This document shows positions 10,151 to 40,673 of a DNA stretch of 64,000 nt, piece by piece. Under the pieces are notes generated by a model. The model had not been told where the DNA came from and made no database searches. It worked only from the letters and a program-made list of their open reading frames with translations. Where the stretch lies: contig CM007990.1 of assembly GCA_002189035.1 (NCBI GenBank), positions 4,836,001 through 4,900,000 of the forward strand. Direction: 5' to 3'. Each line of letters begins with the position of its first letter. The first letter of the stretch is position 1. The translations under genes were made by a program, and so were the position numbers. The stretch comes from Utricularia gibba. Its lineage: Eukaryota > Plantae > Magnoliophyta.

Positions 10151-12611
10151 ATGTCTGCCATATCCTCGGCCGGCGCCCCTTCTCCTCAGCCGCTCCACCA
10201 CCGGCTCACGTTGCTGTGCATCCTCGCCTCCGTTCTGATCTCCAATGTAAGAAATCTTTTTCCTTTACTGTGGCTTCCCCAAAACCCAAGCATTATTCTG
10301 TATTTAATGATTGAAGGTGGTCGGGGTTATCGGAGTTGAGAACCTGTTGACGCCCAAAGCTTATGCCCTGAGCTACTGGGAGAAGCACGTCACCACCGGT
10401 CTACCCAAGTCCGAGTTTCTGATGGATAAGGCGTCCCCGCTCACCGCTGCCCAATACGCCACCTTCAACAAGATCGCCGACGATCAGAACGCCCTGTCGG
10501 CCCACATGCCGGAGCTCTGTTCACAGGCCAACCTTATGTGCTTTCCTAATTCCGCCGGCAGCGCCACCGAGAAGACGTCGGACATCGATTTTCACGGCTA
10601 CAACCATTACCGCCCCCGATCTACCGATGATCACCAGCAGGTAAAACGTTACATAATGAAAGGGTAAATAATTTTTACTGTTTTAATATGTATTTACTTT
10701 TACCCGCTTCTTTTAACAGGAAGATGCAAGGCTTGTTGCCAAGGATATCAGCTTCCACCGTTACCACCAAAAGGGTGGCCACAAAATGGTAAATTAACTA
10801 TAAAATTCGTTGCTTTTTCTATCAAGAAATAATTATTTTTCTAAAAAAAGGGAGAATATTAAAGGTTAAAAAAAAGAATTTTTACTAATTTACAGTATAT
10901 TATTACAGGAAGACGAGATAAAGCCTGAGGCAGTCCAAGATATCAGCTTTCACCGTTACCACCAAAAGGGTGGCCACAAAATGGTAAATTAGTTATAAAA
11001 TTCGTTGCTTTTTCTATTAAGAAATAATTATTTTTCTAAAAAAAGGGAGAATATTAAAGGTTAAAAAAAAGAATTTTTACTAATTTACAGTATATTATTA
11101 CAGGAAGACGAGATAAAGCCTGAGGCAGTCCAAGATATCAGCTTTCACCGTTACCACCAAAAGGGTGGCCACAAAATGGTAAATTAGTTATAAAATTCGT
11201 TGCTTTTTCTATTAAGAAATAATTATTTTTCTAAAAAAAGGAAGAATATTAAAGGTTAAAAAAAGAATTTTAACTAATTTACTGTATATTATTACAGGAA
11301 GACGAGATAAAGCCTGAAGCAGTCAAGGACATCAGCTTCAACCATTACCATCAAAAGGGAGGTCACAAACAGGTAAATTAAAAAATACCAACCTCTAACA
11401 GTAACAACAAGATTTTACTTTTTTTTTTTTTTTAACGTTACCGGTCTTCATGTTCACAGGAAGAGGAGGTGAAGCCCGAGGTCACAGATATCAGGTTTTC
11501 ACGCTACCACCAAAAGGGTGGCCACAAGAAGGTAAACCGGTTGCCCGAAGGTGACTAAAGTTTTTTACTGCTTATGAATTGTTTTGATCGTTTAAGCAGG
11601 AAGAAGTGAAGCCGGATATTAGCTTCACACACTATCACCAAAAGGGAGGACACAAAGAGGTAAACCGAGGTGAAATTTAATAAGCAGAGGGATAGAAATT
11701 TTTTAACTCTTTTTCCTTTCAGGAATTCACCGCGGCTCAATTGGTGGATATCAACCACTACCACAAGGACAGCCAAGTAGATGCTGCGGTAAGAAAGTTT
11801 TTACCGTGGGAAAAAATGTTGTTATGGTTAAATTCCGAAGGGTAACTTTTTTTTTTAACAGCGAGGGGTTGACACTGATATTCGCTTTAAGCGCTATAAC
11901 CACTACAAGAAGGAAACGGGGGATAGTAAAAAGGTTACCAATTGGGTGCCGCCGGGGATCTTCTTCAGGGAGGCGACGCTGAAGCCGGGAGCCGAGATAA
12001 CCATGCCCGACTTCACCGACAAGAAGCCGGCAAGGTCGTTCCTGCCGCGCGCCATCGTCTCAAAGCTGCCCTTCGCCTCCTCCAAGCTGCCTGATATCAA
12101 GAAGATCTTTCACGCCGGCGACGACTCAAGCATGTCCAAAATGTTCACCGAGGCACTCGGAGACTGCGAGCGGGAGCCCAACGTGGGCGAGACGAAGCGG
12201 TGCGTGGCGTCGATCGAGGGCATGGTCGACTTCGCCACCCTGGTGCTGGGCCAGAAGGTGGTCGCCCGTACAATGGAAAACAAGGCCGGATCCAACACCA
12301 ATGTCCTGCTGGGTGATGTGAAAGCCATCAACGGCGGGAGATTGACCAAGTCCGTTTCGTGCCACCAGAGCCTGTATCCCTACCTACTCTACTACTGCCA
12401 CTCGGTGAACGGCATCCGCGTCTACGAAGCCGATATCCTGGATGCAAAAACCAAGTCCAAGATCAACCATGCGGTGGCCATCTGCCACGAGGATACCTCT
12501 TCCTGGAGCGCCGATCACGCCGCCTTCGTTTCGTTGGGTTCCAGTCCCGGGAAGATCGAGGTCTGCCACTGGATCTTCGAGAACGATCTGACGTGGGTCA
12601 TTGCAGACTGA
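10151..12611 (+). CDS. BURP copy B: derived PG1beta-like protein with micro-exon-encoded His/Lys-rich FxxY repeats (~553 aa)
   Basis: Ten exons: 10151-10246, 10317-10640, 10720-10788, 10909-10983, 11104-11178, 11298-11372, 11460-11531, 11600-11659, 11723-11788, 11862-12611. All introns are GT-AG and phase 0, giving a continuous frame into WVPPGIFFRE and an intact BURP domain with four CH motifs. Confidence 0.88.
10789..11372 (+). repeat. Three tandem ~195-bp intron+exon units inside BURP B
   Basis: Units 10789-10983, 10984-11178 and 11179-11372. The first two are near-identical, including intron sequence. Confidence 0.95.
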
Positions 12612-15394
12612 GCAGGGGAAGAAGAGAAAGTATGGAGACCGTCCCGGTCAGAATAAGAGTGGTTTCCTTCGTTGTATGCATCGGAAGGAAACCATGTGGT
12701 GTGGCGCTTGCTTTCTGTTTCAGTTGGATTTGAACGTGTGAATTAGTATCAATGCTTGCTTTCGGTTACACCCATCTACACAACATAATATACACCATGG
12801 CATGTCTTGGCCTCCTAATGAAATAATCAAATAAGTACGCATCATATACGTAAAAAATTAATCGTAGTATGTGTGATAGAAAATTAGGATGATTACTTTT
12901 ACAAGTGCGGAAATTCCCTTGATGGCCACTACATGTACATGTGGATGTTCCTTACGGCCAGCCACTATATATATACCCTAAATTTTGTTATAAACCTCCC
13001 AATTTTACGATCAAATCCCTAATTTTAGGCTTTCGATCTGCATCCCAAAAAAAAAAAAGAGAGTCAATTGCTTCACAATGGCAGGCAACACACAACAGGG
13101 CATACCTATATTAGAATAGTTTGTACTTTTTAAATATTTTAAAATCAATTTTATTATCAAACATAGATGACCGTAGAAATTTAAACACAAGTCATAAAAA
13201 CCTATTTTTATTTTATTAAAATCAATTTTTAATGATTGTTGACAAACATAATTAAATAAAAATATTCAGCTAAATATATCTGATGAACGGAATTGGCACG
13301 AATGAATAACCAATCCATTACATACTTTAAAAAATTGTATATGATAAGTTTTTTGACGTTATAACTACATAGTTTGAAATATCTAGTTCTTTATTGATAA
13401 AAAAAATCAAATATAAATATATAACTGAGAAATGATAAGAGTCCTTTATGTTCAAATGGCATGTGGACCCTTTTAGAACCATTGGAATCACGAAGGATCA
13501 AACATTCAACATAACCACTAATTTAAATAGATAATAAACAGTGCTACAATTATAAATTGGAATACAAAAAAAAAGAAAATTATTTTCAATTCATGAACAT
13601 GAAAGAATTTTTTTTTATTCCCATCAATCATTTTTCATTATTTTACTATTTCAATTTTTTCTTAATTTAAAATAATCAAATTGAAAGTATTTAAAACTCA
13701 TTAAACAATTGCGAAGTGGATGATAAAGGTGTAGTTATAATATAAAAGATGTATTATTTAAAAGTGATGGGGTACAAATCAAATATGATTAATCGAAAAA
13801 CTATCAAATGGCGCTCTGACAGGATAGTGGCGGCCAATAGATCGATATATATTAGAGATACAATATGAAAAGTGGTCGAATTACGGTAAAATAAGCAACG
13901 GTTCTTCGAAAAATAGGATCACAATATAGATACAAAAATCAATCGACATCTACAAAATTCAGGATTCGGTCAAATCAACATTTTCTATGAGTAAAGGAAA
14001 TCCTAAAGGGAAAATTATTGGACTAAAAACCCTCCAACTTGTATCTCCTTTCACCATCTCTGTCTAGTGAAGACATTTTCTAGCGAACTCTGACAGTTAT
14101 GCGGTTTTTCGTTCTTCGACGGTTTCTACGTAAAAATCTCCACTTATCTTCATTTCTGCTAAACGAACCGAGTGAAACATCAAAAACTTAATCAGGAGTG
14201 ACACATTCGGCTGCACCCATAACCCGAAAATCGGACTCCTCTCATATATCGATTTTCGCCCTCAACAAAAAGAGTGGTTAGCACCTAGCATAGGATGATC
14301 ACAAGTTTTTATAAATTAAAATACACAGATTTTTTTTTCTGTGAAATTAAAATGCAAATTTTTAATTAATAAACAAAAATAAATGAGTGGCGATAAATTG
14401 ATTTGCCAATTGCGCTTATAACACATATTTAATTTTTTCGAAATTTGAGAATGAAATATATGTTAATTTTTTGTAAGATCATAATTTATTTCTATTGAAA
14501 TTGAAATGGTGAATTTTAATTTATAGAATAGGGGTATATAATTTTCAAATTTGTTTTTTTTTCTTTTTTTTGCAACTAGAGCAGATAAGCACGGTCACAA
14601 GTCAGATGACAAACAAACAAATTGCAAATCCAGCTGGTGCGGTTGGGCTATGCACATCAGAAACGTAGGTCTCTCCTGCTCTGTATGCTCCACTGAGGAG
14701 AGAAGCAGGTTGGCTGGTTACGAGATGGGATTGCAGCTTCCGTCGTGTTGTTCTTTTCCGATCAGCCGCCAGGGCCCTCAGCAATCAACGAATACACATT
14801 TTGAAATATATGTGAATGAGTTCATGTCATGATAACAAGGGGGTATACATACAGGACAAACGGCTTTTCAGTATTAAAACAATTAATCTCACATAATTAA
14901 ATGAAAATGAAATATTTAAGTATATAAGAAACTTAGGTATTTTAACGTAGTACCTCGAAGATACACAAATTGCAAATCCAGCCCCTGTGGGTGGGCTATG
15001 TACAACAGAAACGTAAGTCTCTCCTACTCCGTATGCTCCACAGAGGATAGAAGCAGGTTGGCTGGTTACGAGATGGGATTGCAGCTTCCGTCGTGTTGTT
15101 CTTTTCCGATCAGCAGCCAGGGCCCTCACCGGTCAACGAATACACATTTTGAAATATATGTGAATGAGTTCATGTCATGATAACAAGGGGTATACACACA
15201 GGACAAACGGCTTTTCAGTATTGGGTGTAGCCAATAGGTCTCGAAACGATTCGACAACGTCGGATAAGCATTGGTACCTGCAGCAGATCCAACTGGTTCC
15301 ATGGCCTGGAGCAGAGTTTGCAGAAGGGGTGCCCCAAGAGGGACTGTAAGAAAACCAACCCATTGGTTGAGTTTGTATGGGATACATGAAGGGT

Positions 15395-16899: not shown

Positions 16900-18070
16900 A
16901 TGTCTCCCATATCCGCGGCCGCCGCTACTTCTCCTAAGCCGCTCCACCACCGGCTCACGTGGCTGTTCGTCCTCGCCTCCGTTCTGGTCTCCAATGTAAG
17001 AAATATTTTTCCTTTACTTCGGCTTCCCGAAATACCAAGCATTATGCTGTATTCAATGATTGAAGGTGGTCGGGGTTATCGGAGTTGAAAACCTGTTGTC
17101 ACCCAAGGCCTATGCCCTGAGCTACTGGAAGAAGCACGTCACCAACGGTCTACCCAAGTCCGAGTTTCTGATGGATAAGGCGTCCCCACTCACCGCTGCC
17201 CAATACGCCATCTTCAATAAGATCGCCGACGATCAGAACGCGCTGTCGGCCCACTTGCCGGAGTTTTGCTCACAGGCCAACCTTACGTGCTTTCATAATT
17301 CCACGGACAGCGATGCTGCGGACTACTGCAGAGTTGATTTCCTGTATGCATATAACTGCAGCTTCAAGAAGGGCCTGGGCGAGAATGAAAAGGTTACGAA
17401 TTGGGTTCCCCCCGGGATGTTCTTCAGGGAGGCGACACTGAAGCCCGGCGTCCTGATAACCATGCCCGACTTCACCGACAAGAACCCCGCCAGGTCGTTC
17501 TTGCCGCGCACCATCGTCTCAAAGCTGCCCTTCGCCTCCTCCAAACTGTCCGATATCAAGAAGATCTTCCACGCCGGAGATCCACAAAGCATGTCCCAAA
17601 TGTTCACCAAGGCACTCGACGACTGCGAGCGGGAACCCAACGTGGGCGAGACGAAGCGGTGCGTGGCGTCGATCGAGGACATGGTGGACTTCGCCACCCT
17701 GGTCCTGGGCCAGAAGGCTGTCCCCCGTACAATCGAGAACAAGGCCGGATCCAACACCACTGCCTTGCTGGGTGATGTGAAACCCATCAATGGCGGGAGA
17801 TTGACCAAGTCCGTTTCGTGCCACCAGCGCCTGTATCCCTACCTACTCTACTACTGCCACTCGGTGAACGGCATCCGCCTCTATGAAGCCGATATCCTGG
17901 ATGCAAAAACCAAGTCCAAGATCAACCATGCGGTAGCCATCTGTCACGAGGATACTTCTTCCTGGAGCGCCGACCACTCTGCGTTCGCGGCGTTGGGGTC
18001 TGGTCCCGGCAAGATCGAGGTCTGCCACTGGATCATCGAGAACGATCTGATGTGGGTCATTGCAGACTGA
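16900..18070 (+). CDS. BURP copy C (366 aa), repeat region reduced to ~20 aa
   Basis: Exons 16900-16995 and 17066-18070; signal peptide, YALSYW N-terminal domain, intact BURP domain. Confidence 0.9.
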
Positions 18071-19213: not shown

Positions 19214-20409
19214 ATGTCTCCCATATCCGCGGCCGCCGCCACTTCGCCTCAGCCGCTCCACCACCGGCTCACGTGGCTGTGCATCCTCGCCTCCGTTCTG
19301 ATCTCCAATGTAAGAAATCTTTTTCCTTTACTGCGGCTTCCCAAAACCCAAGCATTATTCTGTATTTAACAATTGAAGGTGGTCGGGGTTATCGGAGTTG
19401 AGAACCTTTTGACGCCCAAAGCTTATGCCCTGAGCTACTGGGAGAAGCACGTCACCAACAGTCTACCCAAGTCCGAGTTTCTGATGGATAAAGCGTCCCC
19501 GCTCACCGCAGCCCAATACGCCACCTTCAATAAGATCGCCGACGATCAGAACGCGCTGTCGGCCCACTTGCCGGAGTTTTGCTCACAGTCCAACCTTATG
19601 TGCTTTCCTAATTCCGCCGATAGCGTCACCGAGAACACTGAGGAAAAAATTGCCCGTCGCTACTGCGCTCGCTTCAATTATAGATTCGACTATAAATGCA
19701 GCTTCAAGAAGGGCCTGGGCGAGAATGAAAAGGTTACGAATTGGGTTCCCCCGGGATGTTCTTCAGGGAGGCGACACTGAAGCCCGGCGTCCTGATAACC
19801 ATGCCCGACTTCACCGACAAGAACCCCGCCAGGTCGTTCTTGCCGCGCACCATCGTCTCAAAGCTGCCCTTCGCCTCCTCCAAACTGGCCGATATCAAGA
19901 AGATCTTCCACGCCGGAGATCACCCAAGCAGGTCCCAAATGTTCACCGATGCACTCGACGACTGCGAACGGGAACCCAACGTGGGCGAGACGAAGCGGTG
20001 CGTGGCGTCGATCGAGGGCATGGTGGACTTCGCCACCCTGGTCCTGGGCCAGAAGGCTGTCCCCCGTACAATCGAGAACAAGGCCGGATCCAACACCATT
20101 GCCTTGCTGGGTGATGTGAAACCCATCAATGGCGGGAGATTGACCAAGTCCGTTTCGTGCCACAAGCGCCTGTATCCCTACCTACTCTACTACTGCCATT
20201 CAGTGAACGGCATCCGCCTCTATGAAGCCGATATCCTGGATGCAAAAACCAAGTCCAAGATCAACCATGCGGTGGCCATCTGTCACGAGGATACTTCTTC
20301 CTGGAGCGCCGACCACTCGGCGTTCGCGGCGTTGGGGTCTGGTCCCGGCAAGATCGAGGTCTGCCACTGGATCTTCGAGAACGATCTGATGTGGGTCATT
20401 GCAGACTGA
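19214..20409 (+). CDS. BURP copy D, close paralog of C, with a 1-nt frameshift
   Basis: Exons 19214-19309 and 19379-20409. C5 run at 19748-19752 versus C6 in copy C breaks WVPPG; otherwise open. Confidence 0.8.
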
Positions 20410-24543: not shown

Positions 24544-26109
24544 ATGCTTCCCATAACCTCATCGACGGCACCCGCCGCTTCTCGTCAGGGGCGCCTCCTC
24601 TTGTGGACGGCGGTCATCGTCTTCGCTCTAATTTCCAACGTGAGAGATCCCGAACTCGGTTCTGTTTCCTGGATTGAGTGAAGTGAAGTAGCTCACTTTT
24701 CTTTGTGATAATGGATGCAGGTGGGAAGGGCCGGAGGAGGAGTTCAGTTTGGTAAAACCGAGGATCATCAATTAACTCCTAGAGCTTATCTCCTTCGTTA
24801 CTGGGAAGAGCATGTCACTGGTGGCCTACCCAAATCGGAGTTCTTGATGGATAAGGCGTCGCGCCTCACGGCGGCGCAGTACGCTGAGTTCTTAAAGGTC
24901 TCCGATGATCCGAAAGCCCTGTCGGAGCGGTGGCCGGAGCTTTGTGCACAGGCTAACCTCATGTGCTTTCCCGATTCTGTGGTAAGTGTGAAGAACACCT
25001 CCTTGGTTATCGCTTTCATTCTCTACAACGAGTACCGCAGGGGCGGCTCTCACAAAAATCAAAAGGTAACAAGCGAAGTTTCTTCTTCAGCTGATGGAAG
25101 TAATTACAGGATTTAATTTTAAAATTTAAATTAAATAAATCTTTTTTGTAAGAAAAAAACATTTATTTTTATTTGAATTATTTTTCTTCCATTTATTATC
25201 AGGAAAATATAAACCCAGAATTACTGGATATCGATTTCCAGAATTACAACAAAGGAGGTCCTAAGAAGGTATTGAAATTATGCTGCAGATTATTGAAATT
25301 GTATTTTATCTGGAAAAAATGCATTTTTTTTTCATATTTGAAAGTTGGTATATTGTTTTGGACAGCGGGAGAAGCCGATATACTCCGGCACCAAATTCAG
25401 ACGCTACAACGTGTACCACAAGGACGCGGACGGCAACAAGCGGGTACCGCCGGGCATATTCTTCAGGGAGGCGGCGCTGAAATCAGGGGCCCCGGTGCTC
25501 ATGCCGGACTTCATAGACAGAAAGCCCATAAGGTCATTTCTGCCGCGCCGCATCATCTCCAAGCTGCCGTTCTCCTCCGACAAGATATCCGATATCAAGT
25601 TTATTTTTCATGCACAAGTCGACTCAAGCAAGTCCAAAATGTTCACAGAGGCAATCGAGGATTGCGCGCGAGCCCCTAACCGGGGCGAGACGAAGCTATG
25701 CGTGGCGTCGATCGAGGACATGATCGACTTCGCCACGATCGTCCTTGGCCGAGACGTGGTTGTTCGAACCATGGATGGTGCAGCAGGCTCCAATGCCACG
25801 GTGCTGCTGGGTAACGTCAGAGGAATCAACGGTGGAAGAGTGACCAAGTCCGTTTCGTGCCATCAAACCCTTTATCCCTACTTGCTCTACTACTGCCACT
25901 CCGTTAATGGCATTCGGGTCTATGAATCCGACCTCCTGGATCTGAAAACGAAGGCCAGGATCAACCATGGGGTTGCTGTTTGTCATGAGGATACTTCTTC
26001 CTGGAGCTCGAACCATCCGGCTTTCGCCGCCCTGGGCTCCGCCCCGGGTGAGATCGAGGTCTGTCATTGGATCTTTCAGAATGATCTGACATGGGTGGTT
26101 GCAGACTGA
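24544..26109 (+). CDS. BURP copy E (~416 aa)
   Basis: Exons 24544-24639, 24721-25065, 25203-25268, 25366-26109, all phase 0. Cores FILYNEY, FQNY, FRRYNVY; intact BURP domain. Confidence 0.88.
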
Positions 26110-26569: not shown

Positions 26570-26928
26570 TGAAAGGATTCGTGTAGCCTCCGATCTCGAA
26601 GCCTTAAGAGGATTTCTGGGGTTTCTCGGATGAACACAAGAAATGTTTTATTTTATTCCGCACAAAAGAATTACATTGTTTGTTCCTAATTTATAGAGTA
26701 AAGGAATAGCTTCAGCCATTGACTAAGGACACGGAAAGAGGCTGATTTGCTTGCGGAATTTGTGGGGGTTTCCTTCTTTTGTTGTTTTCTTGCATCCTGT
26801 CCAGAATCAGTTCTTGAATAAGATTGTCATCTCCAGCGTTGATTGATTTGCATTCCCTTCCAAGTATAGTTACTCATCAATTGCTGGCTTACTTAGGCAG
26901 AGTAAAGTCTTCGCATCAGATTCTAACA
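26570..26928 (-). repeat. 3' LTR of copia element
   Basis: About 9 substitutions versus the other LTR by manual comparison (~97.5% identity). Confidence 0.95.
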
Positions 26929-29900
26929 CTCCTCCTTGATGGGAAGTGCTTTCCTCCTCCTCAATTTCAGGTGTTCCTGGGAGTTCTTGAAGGCCCATGG
27001 TGTCTCGGTGTTGACAGAAGCTTTTGGGATAGAGGAATTTGGTGAGTGCATCGGATGCTTGTAGTTCCGAAGGTATGTGCTCCAGGTGAATTATTCCAGC
27101 TTGTACATAGTCCCTTAGGACATGAAATTTCACATTTATGTGCTTGCATCTTCCAAACAGCACAGCATTTTTAGACATGTGAATTGCTGATTTGTTGTCT
27201 ATCTTGATGGTTATGGGTCTGGTCGTTGGCATTTTGAGATCATCTAGGATCTTTAAGATCCACACCACATGATTTGAGGCTGCTGCGCATGCCATGTACT
27301 CCGCTTCAGATGATGATTGAGCAACCACTTCTTGTTTTTTACTGTTCCAAGAAAACGCTGTTCCGCCTAGAGTTAAAATGTAGCCTGTTGTTGACTTGTA
27401 ATCTACTAGATCACCTGTGAAATCACTGTCTACATAGCACTCAAGTAGGGGGTTAGTGTATTTTTTGAAGTGAAGTGCAAAATTGATAGTACTCTTTATA
27501 TACTTGAGAATTTTAATTGCTGAATCAAAGTGATTTTGGTGTGGCTTTGTCATGAATCTAGAGAGATAACTTACAGCGAAGGTGATGTCTGGCCTTGTAG
27601 CAGATAGGTACATGAGTGAACCGATGATGCTTCGGTATATTCTTTCGTCCACTAAGTTTCTTGGGTCTGATATGTTTGCCTTTCCTTGCATTGTGTCGAT
27701 TGGGACTGGTTTTGCATCTGGTGAGATGGGTATTGAAGTATATTTTCCCTTGCTGAGCCTATATTTCTTGATGAGGTCCCTGCAGTATTTAGTTTGTGCT
27801 AGGGTGATATAATCATCCCCTTGTGTGATCTCCAGCCCGAGGAAATATCTAACTTCACCTAGATCAGACATCTCAAATGCTTTCATCAAGTTTTCCTTTT
27901 GCTGTTTGATGAGTTCTTGATCTGCACCTGTTATGAGTATGTCATCTACGTATAATGAGATAATTACCTGTGCTTTACCTGGTGTGTCTAAGATGTACAA
28001 TGTAGGATCGCTCTTGCTTCTTTTGTATCCGGTGATCAAGAAGTGTTTGTCTATTTTGGTATACCATTCCCTTGGTGCCTGTTTGAGACCGTATAGAGCT
28101 TTGTGGAGAAACAACACTTTCTCTTCTTCTCCCTTTCTCACAAATCCAGGGGGTTGTTGGATGTAGATTTTTTCTTGCAGTGTTCCATTTAAAAACGCCG
28201 ACTTCACGTCAAGGTGGTAAACTTTCCAGTTGTGACATGCTGCAAGTGCTAGAATGAGCTTAATTGTATCAAGCCTGGCCACAGGTGCAAAGGTTTCATT
28301 GTCCGAGTCCTTACTTTTGAGAGTATCCTTTCGCCACTAAACGTGCCTTCAACTTGTTTATTGTTACATCTGCATTCAGTTTTGTCCTAAAGACCCATTT
28401 GACTCCAATTGGTTTTCTGTCTGTTTTTTCAACTAGGCTCCAAGTTTGATTTTTTTCTATCATTCTGATTTCTTCTTCCATTGCATATTTCCATTCTGGT
28501 TGTTCCAAGGCTTTATTGACTGAATCTGGTTCTTTGTAGGCATTTTGCTTGTTTGTTCCATCTGCCATCAGCACATAATCTGAATCTGGGTATCTTGTTG
28601 ATGGAGTCCGTGTTCTACTGCTCCTTCTTGCTTCGGATTCCAGGTTTTGTGGTTCTGATTCGTGCACTTGTTCTAAGCGGCCATTTTCTCCCTCTGTTAT
28701 TTCATCTCCAGGAAGATAGATATCGTTTTGGGCATTTTCTACGGACTGCTGCCCAATAGGGTTCGTTTCACTGCTATCTTGCTCTTGATTTCTGCCTTCC
28801 TCTTCGAAAAACATAATTTCATCATTTCTTGTAGCAGCTCGATTTCCAGTTTCATTGCCTTCAGCTCCTGTGTATGCTGGCTCATCTATAATATTTTGAT
28901 TTGTTGTTTGTGTATATTCTTCGTCTGAATTTTCTGGAGTCTGGCTTTGCTCTTCAGATGCATGTTCATCATTTACTTGCTTGTTGTTCCAGTTTGGGAA
29001 GAAGTTCAGAATTTTGGTTTTGAGGTAGTCTCCTGTTTCATGGAACTCTTCTCTTGTTTCTTTCCAATTCCAGCCTCTTTCTTCATCAAATATCACATCT
29101 CTGCTGATGATGATTTTTTTTGTTGCGAGATCCAAAATTCTGAAGCCCTTTGTAGTGTTGCTGTAACCTAGAAATACACCAATTTGAGCCCTTTTGTCTA
29201 GTTTTGACCTCTTTTGCTTAGGGACATGAGTATAGCATATGCATCCAAACACTTTCAGGTGCTCAATACTAGGTACACGCTCATGCCAGAGCTCAAACGG
29301 TGTCTTATATTCTGATGTTCCTTTTGTTGGCAATCGGTTGAGGAGATATACTGCTGTATTTACAGCTTTACCCCAGAATCTCAAAGGAATTTCTTTTCCG
29401 TATAGGAGACATCGCGCCATGTCCATAACTGTCCTATTGCGCCTTTCGTTGACTCCATTTTGCTGTGACGTGTAAGGGGCAGTGAAGTGATGAATTATCC
29501 CTTCTTCATTGCAGAGGTTCTCCAATTCTAGAGCTGTGTACTCTCCACCATTATCAGATCTTATATATTTGATCTTCTCTCCACTTTGATTTTCTACCAT
29601 TGCTTTAAATATCTTGAAGCTTTGTAATACTTCTGATCTGTGTTTAAGGAAAAACACCCAACAAAATTTAGTGAAATCATCTACGAAGATAAGAAAATAC
29701 CTATTTCCTGATAGAGTTTCTGTTTGCATCGGTCCACACACGTCGCTATGAATAAGTTCCAATTTTTTTTTTGAATTCCAGGTTCCTTTTCCGAATTGTA
29801 GATGGCATGACTTCCCAACTTGGCATATTTCGCACACTTCCTTAACTGTGGGGAAGCTTGAGAGCCCTTCAACAAGTGAGTTTCTCTGAATTTTCTTGAT

Positions 29901-31437
29901 GGATGTGTAGTTGTGATGACCGAGCCTTTGGTGCCATTGTTTTGCATTTTCTTTTGCTGCCATACTTATCAAAATTTTTGAGTCCCTGCCTTCTTGTGGA
30001 GTTGACGTTCTTAGTGGAAATACTCTTCCTTCCATTGTGATGTTTAGAATCTCCTTGCCAGCTTGTGTTACCACCTTGCAGCTCTGATTTATAAACAGAA
30101 CATTCAATCCTTTAAGCATAAGTTGTCCCACACTGAGTAGATTATGTGAAGCTGAGGGGACATAGTACACATTTGATACATGCAGGAATGTGCTTCAGTG
30201 TCTAGTCGAATTGTGCCAGTTCCCAAAGCCTTGATATAGTTTCCATCTGCTATTTCTATATCCCTTCCATAGAGTGGCTGATATGATACAAAGATGTCAA
30301 AGTCGTTAGTCAAATGGTTGCTGCATCCACTGTCAATTAACCAAGTGTCTTTAGCTCTTAGGTTTGTTGCTGCTGCTAGAATTGTGTATTTGCGCATATT
30401 GTAAATATCAATGATTTCTTTTTCATTAGAAATGAAGGAGCTCATAGCTTTTGCAGTGTTCTCAGAGTTTTGAGACAGATCTTCATTTTCACTTGTTATT
30501 TTCTCTCTTCTCTTCGGACAGACTCTTTGTATGTGTCCCTTTTCTTTGCAGTAGTGACATATCTTCTCTGGATGCCAAAATCAGTTGACTTGGAGGTGAT
30601 TCTTCTGCTTGCAAAAGGGGCACTCGGGATGAGGTCCAATTCGCACCTTATGATCAGATTTCTTTTCAAAATTTGCTTTGAAGGCTATCTCCTTGCTAGC
30701 TCTTGATGCCCTTGTGCTGTCGGTTAATTCAGCATTGTAGAGAGCATTCAGAAGTTCCTCAGGGGTGTGCTTTTTCAATCCTCCAGAGGCTACAATAGCT
30801 GTTAGTGCTGTATCAAAAGAACTGGGCAGTGCAGAAATGATTCTGTTTTTAATTCTTCTGTCGTCGACTGTTTCTCCAAGCTTTGTGAGTTGCTTCAGAA
30901 TACTATGGAGATTTTCCGCCAGTGTTGTGATTGATTCCCCAGGTTTCAGCATCAGATTATCAAGTAGATGCCACTGGTGATTAATCTCCTTTTCAATTTT
31001 TTCTGGGTAGGTTTGTAAGCTTTGTTCAAAGCCTTCCATGCTGCAATTGGATTTGGGGATTCTATGAACACTTCATAGACTTCAGAGGTGACTGCAGCCG
31101 ATAAAATATTCATTCCTCTAAGTTCCTTGTCTTCTCTTTCTTTTATAAGTCTGCTCCTCTCCTCATTAGTTGCATTTTCAGGGATTGTTAGCTCTGCTTC
31201 AAATACATCCCAAGCCTATTGGCTTTTGAGGTAGAGTATCATCCGTAATGACCAGATTCTGAAGTCTTTTCCATCAAACATATGGAGTGGAATCAGAGTG
31301 TTGTTTCCAGCCATGTAATCTATAACAAATGAGGGGTCAGAAAACTGTTTCGTAGATAAGTGACTTACGCTCTTCTTGCAAATTCGTTGTGTTGGTTTTT
31401 TTTCACTAGTGAGATGAACATCCCATAGCTGTCACCA

Positions 31438-31796
31438 TGAAAGGATTCGTGTAGCCTCCAATCTCGAAGCCTGAAGAGGATTTCTGGGGTTTCTCGGATG
31501 AACACAAGAAAGGTTTTATTTTATTCCGCACAAAAGAATTACATTGTTTGTTCCTAATTTATAGAGTAGAGGAATAGCTTCAGCCATTGACTAAGGACAT
31601 GGAAAGAAGCTGATTTGCTTGCGGAATTTGTGGGGCTTTCCTTCTTTTATTGTTTTCTTGCATCCTGTCCAGAATCAGTTCTTGAATAAGATTGTCATCT
31701 CCAGCGTTGATTGATTTGCATTCCCTTCCAAGTATAGTTCCTCATCAATTGCTGGCTTACTTAGGCAGAGTAAAGTCTTCGCATCAGATTCTAACA
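31438..31796 (-). repeat. 5' LTR of copia element
   Basis: Matches 26570-26928; followed on the minus strand by TGGTGACAGCTATGGGA. Confidence 0.95.
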
Positions 31797-34404
31797 TCAG
31801 CATCAGAATGTTTCAAATGAGATTTGTACCTCCGTTGTTTATTCTTGAGGACATTTATATGATAGTCATGATTGATCAGTTTATTCCTAGTTTTTATCTC
31901 TACCTTTCCTCAATGTCAATGTAATTGATCAAGTGATACAAAGTCATCTTACGATCATATTGGTGAATCATGATCTTGTAATAATCTCATTCTTGTGACA
32001 GCTTGTGGATCATTGAATCAATAATGAACTCTAAAATTAGATTGATGCTATGAACAATCATATTGTATAAGAGGTGATGAAATTCGTTGATATGAACTAT
32101 CACCTCCTTATTATCACACATCTGTCAATTTCATATGGAGTCAGTATTTTTGCAGACTACATCTCCTATTAAGTGTATAGTGGTTTTAGAAAAATATTTT
32201 AAAAATGGTTTTATTATCAAATTTTTACAATTTTTTTAAAGAGTAAAAATTTAAAAACCTTTATCATTTTAAAAATCGGATGAAATCCAACTTAAATTTT
32301 ATTAAAAGGATTTCGTGAAAATTATTTTTCTCTTTTGGGACGATTGGAATCACAAATGATAGAAAATGCAAAAATAATAAATTTGAATGCATAAAAATTG
32401 TCAATTCATTATTTTTATTATACAAATATTAATTTTGTATAAAATGAAAAATATATTATTTAAAAGAGTGGTCGGCACCAAACAATCAGTGTTCACACGT
32501 TGTGATAAATGGACCTCACAGATTTTTTTTTTAATTTTTGATAAAATTAAAATACAGATTTGATGGTGTTGAAAATCACCATAATGGAGGAAAAGAACTA
32601 AAAGGGAATAAGAGACACCTAATGACAGGGGTCAAAATCAAACGACAACACTAAATCAATATTATGGAAAAATTTTGAAATAGTTTTTACTTTTCAAAAT
32701 TATTTTACAAAAGTAGAATTAAGAAGTAAAAATAAACAACACCTTATTTTTTATAAAATATTTTTTATAGTATAATTTTAAAAATATTTTTGATAGAATT
32801 ACTTTTACAATTAAAATTGTTCTATAATAAAACTATTTTTATTTCTGAAAAATAGAAATAGGTTTTAAAAATTTTTCAAAACATTTCTTAAGTTGTAATT
32901 ATAGAATGAAAGATATATTATTTAAAAGAGTGGCTAGCATCAAACATAGGGTGACCACAGGTTTTTATAAATTAAAATACACAGATTATTCTTTTTCATG
33001 TTTTTTGAAATTAAAATACAAATTTTTAATTAATAAAACAAAATAAATGAGTGGCGACAAAGTGGCTTGCCTATTGCTCATAAAACAAATTTAAAACATT
33101 TTAGACATATATATTTAAAATTATCAATTTACTAAAAGCACTCAATTATTTAAATTTAAATTTTTAGAAATTTGAGAGTCATGTAATTTGAAAATATATG
33201 CTAAATTTATTTAAAATCATTATTAATTTCTGTTGAAATTGAAGTGACAAATTTTAATTAATAGAATACAGGTATATAATTTTGAAAGTTGAAGTATCTT
33301 GTAAATTGAAATAATTTTCAAAATCAAGTTTTTTTTTTTTTTATTGGCTGCACAAATATGTTTTGATACTTAGGTTTTTTAACGTAGTACCTCGGACATG
33401 CATAAATTGCAAATCCAGCCCCTCTGGTTGGGCTATGCACATCAGAAACGTAGGTATCTCCCACTCAGAATGCTCCACTGGTTACGTCGTGTTGTTCTTT
33501 TCCGATCCGCAGCCGTGGCCCTCCAACCCGTCAGGATCATCAATCAACCAACACACACTTTGAAATGTATGTGAATGAGTTTCATGCGCTGACAGCAAGG
33601 GGCATAGCCAATGGGTCTCCAAACGATTCCACAACGTCGGATAAGGATTGGAACCTACAGCAGATCCAACTCGTTCCATGGCCTGCAACGGAGTTTGCAG
33701 GAGGGGTTGCCCCGAAAGAGAGGGACTGTAGAGGAAACCAACCCGCTGGTTGTATCTGATTGATCATGGGAATCTCCTATTAGAATAAATGATATCACGT
33801 CGATACTTGAAACTAAAAGAATCAATTATATAAAAACATGGTATTTTACTTTCATGTATGCTCGTTCGATTCATCGGATACTAGTTTTCATAATAATATC
33901 AAAATGTTTGTATTGATACATAAATTGAATAGTCAAGATGAATTTTGTATTGATATGAATTTAAATTAAAACAAAACAATGAGATGCATTAATCTTAGAA
34001 TACAAAAATTATACCGATATATAATTTAAGTATTAAAACAAATAATCTCAAATCATGAATTAAAATTAAAATAGTTAAATATATAATAAATCATATATCA
34101 ATATTAATTGATTAAATCTAATTTTTTCTAATATGATTTACATTGATTAAGTATTTGAATTTCATGCATACTTGTCCAATGCATCCAATCCTATTCTTCA
34201 CATTGCCGAACATGGTTCACGATTTTTGCATCTTCAATTTTTTGATTTTCTTCGATAATTTATGGGTAATCAATCACATGTCCATTTCCCCATGCAATGC
34301 ACGCAGCAGCCGCCACTGCCTGCCCAATGATACTATAAAGGAAAGTGCTTCGTTTCAATTCCTGTATCCTCACTTGGTTCCCCTTCTCTTCTCTACAATC
34401 GGCC

Positions 34405-35578
34405 ATGTCTGCCATATCCTCCGCCAGCGCCACTTCTCCTCAGCCGCTCCACCACCGGCTCACGTGGTTGTTCGTCCTCGCCTCCGTTCTGATCTCCAGT
34501 AAGAAATCTTTTTCCTTTACTGCGGCTTCCCCAAAACCCAAGCATTATTCTGTATTTAACGATTGAAGGTGGTCGGGTTATCGGAGTTGAGAACCTGTTG
34601 ACGCCCAAAGCTTATGCCCTGAGCTACTGGGAGAAGCACGTCACCAGCGGTCTACCCAAGTCTGAGTTTCTGATGGATAAGGCGTCCCCGCTCACCGCCG
34701 CCCAATACGCCGCTCTCAACAAGATCGCCGACGATCAGAACGCCCTGTCGGCGCACATGCCGGAGCTCTGTTCACAGGCCAACCTTATGTGCTTTCCTAA
34801 TTCCGCCGACAGCTTCGACTTCGACAACCGTGACTTTCTCCGCTTCTACAGACGTCGCTATGTCAGGATATACAAGAAGAGCCCGGGCGAGAATAAACAG
34901 GATACCAATAGGGTGCCGCCGGGGATCTTCTTCAGGGAGGCGACGCTGAAGCCGGGAGTCACGATAACCATGCCGGACTTCACCGACAAGATGCCGGCAA
35001 GGTCGTTCCTGCCGCGCGCCATCGTCTCAAAGCTGCCCTTCGCCTCCTCCAAACTGGCGGATATCAAGAAGATCTTCCACGCCGGAGATCACCCAAGCAT
35101 GTCCCAAATGTTCACCGAGGCACTCGACGACTGCGAGCGGGAACCCAACGCGGGCGAGACGAAGCGGTGCGTGGCGTCGATCGAGGACATGGTGGACTTC
35201 GCCACCCTGGTGCTGGGCCAGAAGGTGGTCGCCCGTACAATGGAAAGCAAGGCCGGATCCAACACCACTGTCTTGCTGGGTGATGTGAAAGCCATCAACG
35301 GCGGGAGATTGACCAAGTCTGTTTCTTGTCACCAGACCCTGTATCCCTACTTGCTCTACTACTGCCACTCCGTGAACGGCATCCGCGTCTATGAAGCCGA
35401 GATCCTGGATCCAAAAACCAAGTCCAAGATCAATCAAGCAGTGGCCATCTGTCACGAGGATACCTCTTCCTGGAGCGCCGACCACGCCGCCTTCGTTTCG
35501 TTGGGTTCCAGCCCCGGGAAGATCGAGGCCTGCCACTGGATATCCGGGAGTGATCTGACGTGGGTTATTGCAGACTGA
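34405..35578 (+). CDS. BURP copy F (~367 aa), B/C/D-type
   Basis: Exons 34405-34498 (94 nt) and 34569-35578. A -2 at the end of exon 1 and a -1 at the start of exon 2 cancel out. Core FLRFYRRRYVRIY; intact BURP domain. Confidence 0.85.
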
Positions 35579-35943
35579 GCAGAGATGACAAGTATGGAGA
35601 CCGTCCCGGTCAGAATAAGAGTGGTTTCCTTCGTTGTATGTACTGTACTGTGAGGAAACCACGTGGTGTGGTGCTTGCCTTGTGTTTCACCTGTATTCCC
35701 AAGCATGTCGTATGCCCATCTTGTAATATATGTGTTAATTAAAATCAATGATTGCTTTTGATGTCTACTAATCTCCCTTAGGGCTCCAGGGCTTCACCCT
35801 ACGCCTATATAAGCTCACATCAATATACAATTTATTAAAAATATAAAACAAATGCTAATACTTTCTTGAATACAAATAAGAATTAAAAATATAAAAAAAA
35901 TACATATTTTTACTTTTTATGATGAAATCACATATATCTCCCC

Positions 35944-36683: not shown

Positions 36684-37342
36684 CTCTCCTCCGAGGACTG
36701 TTTTGTTGATTAGCAGCGAATGCGTCACGTGACAAACGAAGGACTGGGCCAGGCCCACCTTCTCTGTCCCCGTATGGGCCCAGTATAACGATCACGGGCC
36801 CCACATGCTTTGTGGCGGCTCAATATTGTTTTAGTGGTGGGACCCAATTTATTTTCCAACACTAAATCATGAATCTTGATGTAAAGCACCTGTCAAGTTG
36901 ATAACACACTAGATTACAGTAATGCTATGAAAATTTAAAATAATTCCAACAAATTTTACCACATATTTAATTTCTTTTAATTCTCAATTTTTGTATTAAT
37001 GCGTTATGTATTTTTGAACCACGTGCCCTATAACAGTTGTGTTGGGTGACGAGATAAGGTAAAAAGGAGCTTGGCCAGGCCGACGGGACGCCGTGATGCC
37101 GTACCATAATTCTTTTTATAATGAAGTATGTTATATTTAATATTTTTTAATTATTTTTTGCGTAGAAGTAAAATGATTTTTAAATATAACTTAGAATTAG
37201 ATCCATAGTTTTAAAATAGGGAGTGTTGGGCTGAAAATTAAAAAAAAAATGATTTAGTAATTTTCCCTACCGCTGGCTGCCACGAGTTATAAAAAAAAAA
37301 GGGTTGTTTCTCGGTGAAATCCACCCCCATCTTCTCACAGCG

Positions 37343-38904
37343 ATGCTTCCCATAACCTCCTCGGCGGCACCCGCCGTTTCTCGTCAGGGGCGCCTCCACT
37401 TGTGGACGGTGGTCATCATCTTCGCTCTAATTTCCAACGTGAGAGATCCCGAACTCGGTTTTGTTTCCTGGACTGAATGAAGTAGCTTACTTTTCTATGT
37501 GATAATGGATACAGGTGGTAAGGGTCGGAGGAGGAGTTCATTCTGGTAAACCCGAGGATCATCTGTTAACTCCTAGAGCTTATCTCCTTCGTTACTGGGA
37601 AGAGCATGTCGCTGGTGGCTTACCCAAATCGGAGTTCTTGATGGATAAGGCGTCGCCCCTCACGGCGGCGCAGTACGCTGAGTTCTTAAAGGTCTCCGAT
37701 GATCCGAAAGCCCTGTCGGAGCGGTTGCCGGAGCTTTGTTCACAGGCTAACCTCATGTGCTTTCCCGATTCTAAGGAAAGTGTTAAGAACACATCATTGG
37801 TTATCGCTTTCATTCTCTACAACGAGTACAGCAGGGGCGGCTCTCAGAAAAATCAAAAGGTAACAAGCGAAGTTTCTTCTTCAGCTGGTTGAAGTAATTA
37901 CAGGATTTTAATTTTATAATTTAAAATAAATAAATCTTTTTTGTAAGAAAAAAACATTTATTCTTATTTGAATTATTTTTCTTCCATCTATTATCAGGAA
38001 AATATAAACCCAGAATTACTGGATGTCGACTTCCAGAATTACAACAAAGGAGGTCCTAAGAAGGTATTGAAATTACGCTGCAGATTATTGAAATTGTATT
38101 TTATGTGGAAAAAAAATGCATTTTTTTCATATTTCAAAGTTGGTATATTGTTTTGGACAGCCGGAGAAGCCGATATACTCCGGCACCAAATTCAAACGCT
38201 ACAACGAGTACCACAAGAACGCGGACGGCAACAACCGGGTACCGCCGGGCATATTCTTCAGGGAGGCGGCGCTGAAATCCGGGGCCCCGATGCTCATGCC
38301 GGACTTCATAGACAGAAAGCCCATAAGGTCATTTCTGCCGCGCCGCATCATCTCTAAGCTACCGTTCTCCTCCGACAAGATATCCGATATCAAGTTTATT
38401 TTTCACGCGCAAGACGACTCAAGCAAGTCCAAAATGTTCACGGAGGCAATCGAGGATTGCGAGCGAGCCCCTAACCGGGGCGAGACGAAGCGATGCGTGG
38501 CGTCGATCGAGGACATGATCGACTTCGCCACAATCGTCCTTGGCCGAGACGTGGTTGTTCGAACCATGGATGGTGCAGCAGGCTCCAATGCCACGGTGCT
38601 ACTGGGTAACGTCAGAGGAATCAACGGTGGAAGAGTGACCAAGTCCGTTTCGTGCCATCAAACCCTTTATCCCTACTTGCTCTACTACTGCCACTCCGTT
38701 AATGGCATTCGGGTCTATGAATCCGACCTCCTTGATCTGAAAACGAAGGCCAAGATCAACCATGGGGTTGCTGTTTGTCATGAGGATACTTCTTCCTGGA
38801 GCTCGAACCATCCGGCTTTCGCCGCCCTGGGCTCCGCCCCGGGTGAGATCGAGGTCTGTCATTGGATCTTTCAGAATGATCTGACATGGGTGGTTGCAGA
38901 CTGA
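37343..38904 (+). CDS. BURP copy G (~416 aa), close paralog of E
   Basis: Exons 37343-37438, 37515-37859, 37998-38063, 38161-38904; same structure as E. Confidence 0.88.
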
Positions 38905-39189
38905 GCGCAAGAATGTAGAAATAAATAAGTCTTGTGTTGCTTCACTGAAAGCTCAAGCTCCCAATGTGGTGTATGATTAAAAATATCAATGAATTAAATA
39001 TTTAAGAGATATTGAGGATGATGATGGCCACATGTGACCTGCGCAATCAACGTTTCAATGCCCGGCTTCGCGACAAGAATCAACAGAGGACATGACAGCC
39101 CTTGGAGACTGCCCCCCACCTAAAGCAAATTAATTGGAGAGCCTGTCGCGAGCAACGCTCAGTTGCTTTCTTCATTTCTTCACCCAGCT

Positions 39190-40673
39190 ATGGCGTCTGA
39201 TCATCCACTCCACCGCCGCCTGATGTGGCTGTTGGCCTTCGCCGTACCTCTAATTTCCCATGTAAGGAATCATAAGCTTCCACGCTTTGCTCATCTGTTA
39301 GTTGCACAACTAGTTGCACGGTGTTTAACCAAAACACAAATATTATCCTGAAGGTGGGAAGGGTCGCCGGAGGAGGAGAGAAAATTCCGTCGACGCCTAA
39401 AGCTTATCTGTTTAGTTACTGGGAAAAGCATGTCACCAACGATGCACCGCTCTCGGGGTTCTTGCTGGATAAGGCGTCACCGCTCACGGCGGCGCAGTTC
39501 GCCGAATTCCGTAAGATTGCCGATGACCCGAAAGCCCTGTCGCAACGACTGCCGGTGTTCTGCGCACAGGCGAACCTCATGTGTTTCAAACACCACGAGG
39601 ACTCCCCAGAACTGGAAGATCAAAAGGTAAAAAGCAGCTTGTGTATAAATTCATTTTTTAATTCCTTCTGTTTTCTTGAGCATGTTTATTTTTAAAACAG
39701 GAAAATAAAACGCCTCAATTCCAGACATACAACCAAAAGGGAGGCAGTAAAGAGGTAAACACGTTGAAATCGTGCATTTATTACAAAATTCAAATTTAAA
39801 TATTAATAAAATAATAATTTATAATAGCGAAATGAATTTAGTTAATTATTTTTTGACAAATATTTTTGTTTAATTTGTACTTAAAGTGCAAAGCCGTGTT
39901 CTGAATAGGGACATGAAAAGCCTCCGGCGGACTTTCCTCCGCAGTTCAAAGAATACAACCACTACCACAAGGACTTCGAAGGCTACAAGGGGATAAACAA
40001 GCCGGCGGCGCCGCCGGGGATATTCTTCCGGGAGGCCATGTTGAAACCCGGTACCCAGTTGCGGATGCCGGATTTTATCGATCAGAAGCCCAGAAGGTCA
40101 TTCTTGCCCCGCGCCATCGTCTCGAAGCTGCCCTTCGCCTCCTCCAAGATCTCCGAAATCAGAACTATTTTTCACGCTGCGAATGACTCAAGCATGTCCA
40201 AAATGATCTCCGACGCGACCCAGGGCTGCGAGCGTGTCCCCAACCGAGGCGAAACCAAGCGGTGCGTGGCGTCGATCGAGGACATGATCGACTTCGCCAC
40301 CTTCATCCTGGGCCGAAACGCGGAAGTTCGAACCATGGATACCCCGGCCGGCTCCAATGGCGTGATCTTACTGGGAGACGTGAAAGGGATCAATGGTGGA
40401 GAAGTGACCAACTCAGTCTCGTGTCATCAGACACTCTATCCGTACCTGCTCTACTACTGCCACTCTGTCAATTTCGTCCGGGTCTACGAAGCCGACATCC
40501 TGGATCCTAAAACGAAGTCCCAGGTTAACCATGGCGTTGCCATCTGCCATGAGGATACTTCTTCCTGGAGCCCCGACCACGCAGCCTTCCAGGCACTGCG
40601 CTCCAGCCCGGGAAAGACAGAGGTCTGCCATTGGATCTTCCAGAACGATCTGATTTGGGTTGCTGCAGATTGA
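39190..40673 (+). CDS. BURP copy H (~387 aa)
   Basis: Exons 39190-39261, 39354-39626, 39701-39754, 39909-40673, all phase 0. Cores FQTY, FKEYNHY, FEGY; intact BURP domain. Confidence 0.87.

Follow-up and report, generated by a model that had tools for sequence, protein, structure and literature searches.

A tandem array of PG1beta-derived BURP genes in Utricularia gibba, with FxxY repeats lost, reduced or carried on micro-exons

We report eight BURP genes lying head to tail on the forward strand of the Utricularia gibba genome, namely a canonical PG1beta-like gene, A (3833-5803), and seven derived paralogues, B-H (10151-40673), with positions counted along the window, the whole 64,000-nucleotide stretch of DNA that was analysed (Table 1). 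PG1beta is the beta subunit of tomato polygalacturonase 1 and one of the four founding BURP proteins. We are highly confident of the descriptive part of this account, which covers the genes and their structure, the splicing and expression of B, and the descent of the array and the selection acting on it. We would further propose that the array encodes PG1beta-derived precursors in which FxxY motifs undergo a -2 Da oxidation, plausibly by the fused BURP domain, and whose products are modified polypeptides. Taken as a whole, this statement is tentative, and we judge it plausible rather than probable.

Table 1. Positions of the BURP genes and associated features in the window
Feature	Position	Strand	Exons and remarks
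Gene A, canonical PG1beta-like	3833..5803	+	2 exons (3833-3922, 3990-5803)
Gene B	10151..12611	+	10 exons; 553 aa
B micro-exon block	10720..11788	+	seven phase-0 exons, 60-75 nt each
B micro-exons	10720-10788, 10909-10983, 11104-11178, 11298-11372, 11460-11531, 11600-11659, 11723-11788	+	
Gene C	16900..18070	+	2 exons; 366 aa; intact
Gene D	19214..20409	+	frameshifted as assembled; no FxxY
Gene E	24544..26109	+	exons 24544-24639, 24721-25065, 25203-25268, 25366-26109; 416 aa; consensus-predicted splicing
Copia-type LTR retrotransposon, between E and F	26570..31737	-	LTRs 26570-26869, 31438-31737
Gene F	34405..35578	+	2 exons; 367 aa; intact
Gene G	37343..38904	+	exons 37343-37438, 37515-37859, 37998-38063, 38161-38904; 416 aa
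Gene H	39190..40673	+	exons 39190-39261, 39354-39626, 39701-39754, 39909-40673; 387 aa

Membership of the BURP family is clear throughout the array. A Pfam profile search matched PF03181 in all eight genes (E 1e-60 to 1e-65), the match covering profile positions 1-215 of 216 in C, E, F and H, at E 3e-62 to 1e-65, and extending up to the frameshift in A. An earlier sequence-only reading of this DNA had described a signal-like start, a YxLxYW domain and four CH dipeptides, and this architecture was recovered in every one of the eight splice-aware models: each has a hydrophobic, signal-peptide-like N-terminus, a YxLxYW segment (as YALSYW, YLLRYW or YLFSYW), the motif FF[RK]E and the spacing CH-x10-CH-x27-CH-x25-CH-x8-W, the last in A and D only when the frameshift is read through as X. 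As assembled, A carries a 1-nt frameshift (GGG to GG, at about 5502) upstream of its CH motifs, with an in-frame stop at 5511-5513; in D, a run that is C6 in gene C is C5 (about 19749-19753) just 5' of the BURP domain, leading to a stop at 19778-19780. Each of these frameshifts falls in a homopolymer and could have been introduced by the assembly. In F, the frame is kept by compensating -2 and -1 nt changes at both borders of intron 1. The label of a gene cluster, which the same reading had applied, did not survive, since the array consists of paralogues only; no tailoring or protease genes were found near it, and its surroundings yielded nothing beyond genes for a protein kinase, a TBL/PMR5 acyl-esterase and a PMEI.

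All database matches to the array proteins are PG1beta-like, the best matches to A being Lamiales PG1beta proteins at 68% identity. No orthologues of B-H were found in the protein database, and the closest match to F is 54% identical. In a tree whose rows are PG1beta-like proteins only, A-H are monophyletic among the asterid proteins (SH-aLRT 95), and B-H group together (SH-aLRT 99) as the sister clade of canonical A, as expected from the earlier suggestion that these genes derive from PG1beta. We suggest that B-H arose by duplication of an A-like canonical gene, and that its one-exon domain of about 20 FxxY repeats would then have been replaced differently in each copy.

In B-H, hypervariable linkers lie between conserved domains. 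For the BURP and N-terminal domains, dN/dS is 0.13-0.28 at dS 0.9-1.5 between subgroups (0.24-0.28 for the BURP domains of C and F), and both flanking domains of B-H are under long-term purifying selection. Conservation across 110 homologues reaches at least 95% in 83 columns, and B-H retain 79 of these; the four changes they share, I>F, T>M, P>N and V>I, fall at near-invariant columns, and two of these adjoin the second CH pair, where CHSVPKV has become CHSVNGI, which suggests a retuned site and not a dead one. Positive selection was considered for the linkers and rejected, their pairwise dN/dS values of 0.30-0.71 all being below 1. In the C/D and C/F pairs, the synonymous divergence of the linkers is far above that of the flanking BURP domain. 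The hypervariability of the linkers in these pairs is therefore put down to indels and to mosaic gene conversion affecting the flanks, and not to demonstrable adaptive substitution.

The repeat domain is where the paralogues part company. Gene A holds 21 FxxY repeats in one exon, close to the figure of about 20 given earlier, and only A, a two-exon gene, has the arrangement of some 20 repeats of 14 aa within a single large exon. Every aromatic motif that had been listed for the derived copies was located in the array; the broader claim that all seven carry such cores holds for B, E, G and H (8, 3, 3 and 3 FxxY motifs) and fails for C, D and F, which have none. In the four genes that retain it, FxxY is far commoner than chance would give (8 against 0.43 expected in B; 3 against about 0.2 in each of E, G and H, with P=0.0002 over 20,000 shuffles). 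Core-like Tyr motifs upstream of the BURP domain comprise, in B, six repeat units whose flanks are invariant and an FxxYNxY motif at either end, and three non-identical motifs in each of E, G and H. We note that repeated Tyr motifs upstream of the domain are equally a feature of PG1beta proteins that are not burpitide precursors.

Gene B shows the most extensive reorganization. Its product runs from the signal peptide and N-terminal segment through FHGYNHY, six His/Lys-rich FxxY micro-exon repeats and one degenerate unit, and FKRYNHY to the BURP domain, the micro-exon repeats supplying FHRY three times, FNHY, FSRY and FTHY. The introns between the micro-exons measure 63-120 nt, and an exon-plus-intron unit of 195 bp is present in 3.3 copies at 95% identity. 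Across the six FxxY units, the Phe, the Tyr and the frame DI..F..YHQKGGHK are invariant and the positions inside the putative ring vary. Among the older units, micro-exon identity is 0.63-0.81, whereas the introns (0.32-0.38) are unalignable. The linker has 10% His and a pI of 7.0, compared with 1% His and a pI of 4.75 in A. Seven of the nine splice junctions were recovered as GT..AG joints in RNA contigs (up to four runs, three organisms), and loose ends of RNA contigs fit the other two, at which exons 4, 5 and 6, near-identical to one another, are joined. Gene B is very highly expressed: word depth on its exons reaches thousands (runs X1, X5), compared with 4-9 for contigs of intron alone and 0 for the flank downstream. 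Of the words in the F-G-H stretch, a share of 0.21-0.23 occurs in the RNA runs, a value pooled over three genes. We suggest that B represents a newly expanded array of 20-25-aa FxxY units, one to each phase-0 micro-exon, which would have grown by unequal crossing-over of the 195-bp unit.

The remaining copies are simpler. E, G and H have one phase-0 micro-exon each, and their three motifs are spread over several exons: FILYNEY, FQNY (on the micro-exon) and FRRYNVY in E; FILYNEY, FQNY and FKRYNEY in G, whose BURP-domain DNA is 97.8% identical to that of E; and FQTY (on the micro-exon), FKEYNHY and FEGY in H. In C, D and F the linker is a stub of 41-49 aa in which the FxxY register would have been lost. 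That of C (41 aa) has an aromatic loop bracketed by Cys, CRVDFLYAYNC; that of D, CARFNYRFDYKC, differs from it even though the BURP-domain DNA of the two genes is 97.5% identical; and that of F reads FDFDNRDFLRFYRRRYVRIY.

The proposed chemistry starts from what is known of the canonical repeats. Modification of Phe in PG1beta has been noted since 1992 (PMC5313189, PMC4460304). Every identified Phe of FxxY in PG1beta is 2 Da lighter than expected, which has been read as didehydro-Phe, and FxxY is the sole context of this change, for which no enzyme has been named since 2017 (Sergeant et al. 2017, PMC5313189). BURP domains, for their part, carry out copper-dependent oxidative cross-linking of Tyr/Trp cores, including i,i+3 Tyr-O-C-beta rings (PMC12186524, PMC11253845); arabipeptin has rings of this kind, with the spacing found in FxxY. 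We infer that the FxxY motifs retained in the array are substrates of the PG1beta-type -2 Da oxidation of Phe, and that the fused BURP domain, with its four copper-binding Cys-His pairs intact, would install it in cis, either by alpha,beta-dehydrogenation of Phe or by closing an i,i+3 ether ring from Phe C-beta to Tyr O. Mature tomato PG1beta consists of the middle domain alone (PMC4460304), and the expected products would likewise be modified polypeptides of the wall or apoplast, not free small cyclic peptides. In the literature searched, no chemistry has been reported for any PG1beta-class BURP domain, nor any burpitide link to PG1beta proteins, in agreement with the earlier remark that no cyclase had been demonstrated in this class.

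Structural comparison is consistent with a domain of the cyclase fold. In the AlphaFold2 model of H, pLDDT exceeds 90 across most of the BURP domain, and the sole PDB matches returned by Foldseek are 8SY2 and 8SY3, the peanut BURP peptide cyclase (probability 1.00, TM 0.53/0.66); the CH pairs of the array align with those of 8SY2. In fused burpitide cyclases of the AhyBURP fold, two copper ions are bound by four conserved His residues. The linker of the model (pLDDT <50) is disordered and is uninformative on the docking of FKEYNHY to the BURP domain.

Set against canonical PG1beta and AtPGL1-3, which have two exons and about 21 Gly/Asn/Ser-rich repeats of 14 aa in one of them, B-H have 0-8 motifs; those of B, E, G and H lie on phase-0 micro-exons, the unit of B is 20-25 aa long and rich in His, Lys and Glu, and B-H carry four substitutions of their own, including CHSVP to CHSVN. 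In H, FKEY lines up with TFK[ED]Y, a conserved repeat found towards the end of the domain in canonical proteins. The FxxY tetrapeptide of didehydro-Phe beta-PG (PMC5313189) is shared by B, E, G and H and missing from C, D and F, and its flanks are YHQKGGHK or YNxYHK in the array as opposed to YGxxGN.

While this oxidative reading is the one we prefer, it is also possible, with a probability only modestly lower, that we are looking at an ordinary array of paralogues undergoing repeat loss, in which the BURP domain does not act enzymatically on its own linker and serves instead in metal binding, targeting or protein interaction, the linkers being disordered spacers with decaying motifs and some copies being on their way to becoming pseudogenes. 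Short-linker genes, often in tandem, have appeared independently in Fagaceae/Myrtaceae, Sapindaceae, Trifolium, Oldenlandia, Rhododendron and Salvia. Those of Quercus, Castanea, Acer, Eucalyptus, Trifolium and Rhododendron share with the array a conserved N-segment, a short hypervariable linker, often aromatic or Cys-bracketed, and a BURP domain; they are often tandem (as at locus L001 of Rhododendron griersonianum) and, according to the tree, arose separately in each lineage. The His-rich unit FxxYHQKGGHK of B has no counterpart among the eudicot short linkers listed. The loss of FxxY from C, D and F, the frameshifts of A and D as assembled, and the predicted disorder of the linker fit this explanation. 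Since C and F have constrained BURP domains and no FxxY, the function of the domain cannot depend wholly on an FxxY substrate in cis, and AtPGL3, which keeps its BURP domain and requires it for function, makes a non-catalytic role possible. Mere decay, however, does not sit easily with four genes (B, E, G and H) that retain FxxY well beyond chance expectation, with older B units in which Phe and Tyr are invariant and exons but not introns are conserved, with the recent expansion and very high expression of B, or with the retention of all four Cys-His pairs at dS of about 1.

A bolder form of the oxidative reading would make the PG1beta-class BURP domain the missing -2 Da FxxY enzyme, its product being an ether ring or a dehydro-Phe breakdown product, with B-H as minimal substrates of one to eight FxxY motifs fused to a retuned CHSVN domain and B yielding, in very large amounts, a poly-cyclised His/Lys-rich repeat protein or released cyclic peptides. 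We consider this unlikely.

More improbable is the interpretation with which the array was first brought forward, that the BURP domains of B, E, G and H cross-link Tyr in FxxY or FxxYNxY and that proteases then free small peptides, with one ring or two, which serve as specialised metabolites. Burpitides are defined as a class by a macrocyclic side-chain cross-link installed by a BURP domain (PMC11253845), and the fused precursors AhyBURP/Sali3-2, LbaLycA, SkrBURP and KjaBURP have in common with the array the BURP fold, the four Cys-His pairs and aromatic motifs upstream in the same chain, which are repeated in B. LbaLycA and SkrBURP show the same succession of signal peptide, repeated aromatic motif and BURP domain; it is also common to all BURP classes and does not discriminate. 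The comparison of FxxYNxY with the SkrBURP core VLFYPSY stands in that Tyr occupies positions 4 and 7 in both, a likeness at the level of letters. The eight FxxY motifs of B, six of them in units whose flanks are invariant and whose ring positions vary, its very high expression, the hypervariability of linkers amid conserved domains, and intact Cys-His pairs in a BURP domain under purifying selection would all suit such precursors. The cores themselves, however, are charged and rich in Lys, His and Arg, where known burpitide cores are hydrophobic, as in cyclopeptide alkaloids (ILLY, FFFY, FLWGY), or begin with Gln; none of the array cores has an N-terminal Gln or a recognisable cleavage flank. 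The array is only about 19% identical to AhyBURP, which belongs to another BURP subclass. The motifs descend from FxxY repeats of PG1beta, which remain part of a protein of some 38 kDa; they are missing from C, D and F, and no tailoring genes were found nearby. Because these motifs are homologous to PG1beta repeats already found at -2 Da, a -2 Da read-out could not separate a burpitide from modification of the PG1beta type.

Least probable, by a little, is a split system in which the intact, repeat-less C and F would be BURP oxidases acting in trans, either on the FxxY motifs of B, E, G and H or on precursors encoded elsewhere or otherwise distinct. Although the BURP domains of C and F are constrained with no FxxY in cis, and pathways with an adjacent burpitide precursor and cyclase are already known, the PG1beta N-terminal segment is absent from known split cyclases and each of B, E, G and H has an intact BURP domain of its own.

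We note that the array offers a natural test set for the question of whether a PG1beta-class BURP domain modifies its own repeats, as it provides short natural constructs in which an intact domain is fused directly to between one and eight FxxY motifs, together with built-in controls in C and F (no motif) and in A (canonical). It also illustrates clearly how coding repeats can be reorganised into a series of symmetric micro-exons, with growth by exon-plus-intron duplication. Should the BURP domain prove inactive here, the array would still document well how the PG1beta repeat domain has collapsed repeatedly among eudicots.

Exon 2 of E contains a GTAAGT at 24982, a candidate alternative phase-0 donor whose use would take FILYNEY out of the product; the VVSVKN of E corresponds to KESVKN in G, and the donor is therefore probably absent from G. 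In the copia element between E and F, the two LTRs are 97% identical and the pol reading frame is broken into two ORFs.

A six-frame scan of the window found eight BURP C-terminal signatures, all on the + strand, and all eight match Pfam PF03181 across the whole model (E 1e-60 to 1e-65). In splice-aware gene models built from sequence, modelled splice sites are GT..AG throughout, and internal exons of the linker region, between the N-terminal segment and the BURP domain, are phase 0 without exception. All eight proteins combine a hydrophobic, signal-like N-terminus with a YxLxYW segment and CH-x10-CH-x27-CH-x25-CH-x8-W. The sequence-only reading had credited the signal peptide, YxLxYW and four CH to every derived copy (B-H), and they are seen in all of them, but D is frameshifted and lacks a BURP domain as assembled.

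BURP genes and other features located in the window
Feature	Position	Strand	BURP signature end	Description
A	3833-5803	+	5803	canonical PG1beta-like, two exons, 21 FxxY in one exon
B	10151-12611	+	12611	ten exons
C	16900-18070	+	18070	two exons
D		+	20409	
E	24544-26109	+	26109	four exons
F	34405-35578	+	35578	two exons
G	37343-38904	+	38904	four exons
H	39190-40673	+	40673	four exons
Copia-type LTR retrotransposon	26570-31737	-		between E and F
Protein kinase gene	43967-44913			downstream of array
TBL/PMR5 PC-esterase gene	45895-47671			downstream of array
Pectin methylesterase inhibitor (PMEI) gene	48593-49105			downstream of array

Each aromatic motif named in that reading was found in the gene models, but short aromatic cores do not extend to all seven derived genes. 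FxxY, the canonical PG1beta repeat core, occurs 21 times in A, eight in B and three each in E, G and H (P=0.0002 against shuffled linkers), while none was found in the linkers of C, D and F, which carry FxY or other spacings only. The B, E, G and H motifs are homologous to the FxxY repeats of PG1beta, the FKEY of H being the counterpart of the conserved TFK[ED]Y repeat, and the simplest expectation from this homology is PG1beta-type -2 Da oxidation. In PG1beta proteins of alfalfa, hemp, Arabidopsis and maize, -2 Da was recorded on all identified FxxY Phe and read as didehydro-Phe, formed by an unknown enzyme (PMC5313189). BURP domains act as copper-dependent peptide cyclases in the USP type and in several others (PMC11253845). 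The SkrBURP core VLFYPSY is linked at Leu2-Tyr4 and Tyr4-Tyr7, and the ArbB2 core FLWGY at Leu2-Tyr5, an i,i+3 ring (PMC12186524). Since the copper ligands are intact, the domain is strongly constrained and relatives have this chemistry, we tentatively suggest that the fused BURP domain might install the -2 Da oxidation on the FxxY motifs.

A non-catalytic BURP domain is a rather doubtful but serious alternative, sustained by C and F, in which the domain is conserved although FxxY is absent; the intact copper ligands speak for catalysis. In tomato, mature PG1beta consists solely of the middle domain, and in AtPGL3 the BURP domain is retained and required (PMC4460304). The release of small cyclic peptides, as first proposed for a burpitide (BURP-cyclase RiPP) cluster, is possible but improbable: the cores are charged, do not begin with Gln and show no clear cleavage flanks, and no tailoring genes were found among the neighbors (kinase, TBL/PMR5 esterase and PMEI). 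The burpitide literature searched mentions PG1beta only as founding family member and does not tie burpitide chemistry to its class, in agreement with the earlier statement that no demonstration of cyclase activity is known there. A -2 Da assay by itself would not discriminate between a ring and dehydro-Phe. A split, in-trans system is improbable too. In a structure model of the H last exon (alignment of 116 rows), pLDDT is >90 across most of the BURP domain and <50 in the 32-residue linker containing FKEYNHY and FEGY; sequence and fold comparison both give a single solved relative, the peanut USP-type BURP peptide cyclase (8SY2/8SY3).

Neither A nor D encodes a BURP domain as assembled. A has lost 1 nt near 5502 (GGG>GG; CTGGG to CTGG), shifting the frame ahead of the four CH motifs and into a TAA at 5511-5513 (window 5493-5513). 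D, 97.5% identical to C in BURP-domain DNA, has lost 1 nt in a C-run at about 19749-19753 (C6 in C, C5 in D) immediately upstream of the domain, so that translation stops prematurely at 19778-19780 (window 19742-19780). Because both sit in homopolymers, both frameshifts may be assembly errors; A is either a real pseudogene or such an error. In F, exon 1 has become 2 nt shorter at its end and exon 2 has become 1 nt shorter at its start (window 34490-34580); the two losses together preserve the frame across intron 1 (VLISSGRVIGVE vs VLISNVVGVIGVE in B).

Seven micro-exons (60-75 nt each) and the introns of 63-120 nt between them make up the middle region of B. This layout is derived, since AtPGL genes of the canonical type are two-exon genes (PMC4460304). 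Six of the seven encode E[DE]E[IV]KPE..DI.F..YHQKGGHK units, the last being degenerate, and a 195-bp exon-plus-intron unit is present in 3.3 copies at 95% identity. Four runs (coded organisms A, A, B, D) supplied RNA contigs for 9950-12950; these show the GT..AG joints 10246>10317, 10640>10720, 10788>10909, 11372>11460, 11531>11600, 11659>11723 and 11788>11862, and loose contig ends match the joins among the near-identical exons 4, 5 and 6. Word depth is in the thousands on exons, climbing to about 100,000 in a single 3' bin of run X1, against 4-9 on intron-only contigs and 0 on the downstream flank in all four runs. B is real and highly expressed. Among older units, exon identity is 0.63-0.81 while introns are unalignable (0.32-0.38); therefore, the peptide repeat is under constraint.

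Two rare joints, 10788>11299 (omitting exons 4-5, depth 22) and 10784>11598 (omitting exons 4-7, depth 8), stand beside a main form in the thousands and may reflect exons skipped in frame or alleles that have fewer of the 195-bp units. Contigs of runs X1 and X8 begin near 10129-10156; one of run X5 (depth 2920) extends from upstream of 9950 (start estimated at about 9838) through exon 1, and the B leader in that sample therefore exceeds 300 nt. Expression of F, G and H is given collectively: 0.21-0.23 of the words of their stretch are present in the runs. A strong phase-0 GTAAGT lies at 24982 in exon 2 of E (window 24979-24987) and, if used as a donor, would drop the FILYNEY segment; G probably lacks it, because it reads KESVKN where E reads VVSVKN.

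By BURP-domain DNA identity the genes sort into {B,C,D,F}, {E,G}, {H} and {A}, members of different groups being 70-77% identical. In a maximum-likelihood tree that also includes 53 PG1beta-like homologues, A-H come out as one clade (95); within it, B-H are a derived clade (99) whose sister is A, in support of the proposed derivation from PG1beta. The best database matches of A are Lamiales PG1beta proteins (68% identity), and no B-H orthologues were found in the protein database searched. Short-linker forms of Fagaceae/Myrtaceae, Sapindaceae, Trifolium, Oldenlandia, Rhododendron and Salvia each group with their own lineage, so repeat-domain collapse is recurrent, often in tandem genes. One independent instance is a Rhododendron griersonianum locus (CM030799.1, L001:10001-25903), where tandem PG1beta-like genes show a spacing of about 1 kb between N-terminal segment and BURP domain and only a very short linker, one BURP copy carrying an in-frame stop within its first CH motif.

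Between subgroups, dS of 0.9-1.5 in the BURP domain and low dN/dS (0.13-0.28 there, 0.12-0.31 in the N-terminal segment) mark old, constrained genes. C/D and C/F linkers diverge far above their flanks, synonymous sites included, which points to indel turnover and gene conversion of flanks rather than demonstrable positive selection. B-H keep 79 of 83 columns conserved at >=95% in 110 outside homologues; of the four substitutions they share (I>F, T>M or I, P>N, V>I), two directly follow the second CH pair (CHSVPKV to CHSVNGI).

Two of the three downstream neighbors are cell-wall genes (window 43967-49105). The Copia element has 300-nt LTRs, 97% identical, and a split pol (ORFs of 619 and 470 aa). 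ORF-like stretches resembling one another (8589-8933, 14542-15346, 22599-22933 and 33383-33756; example reading ...CCSFPIS.QGP...STNTHFE.YVNEF...) precede several BURP copies by about 1-2 kb and probably belong to the duplicated unit or to a dispersed element. Between A and B, a 65-bp tandem repeat (7341-7530) is present in 3 copies at 91% identity.
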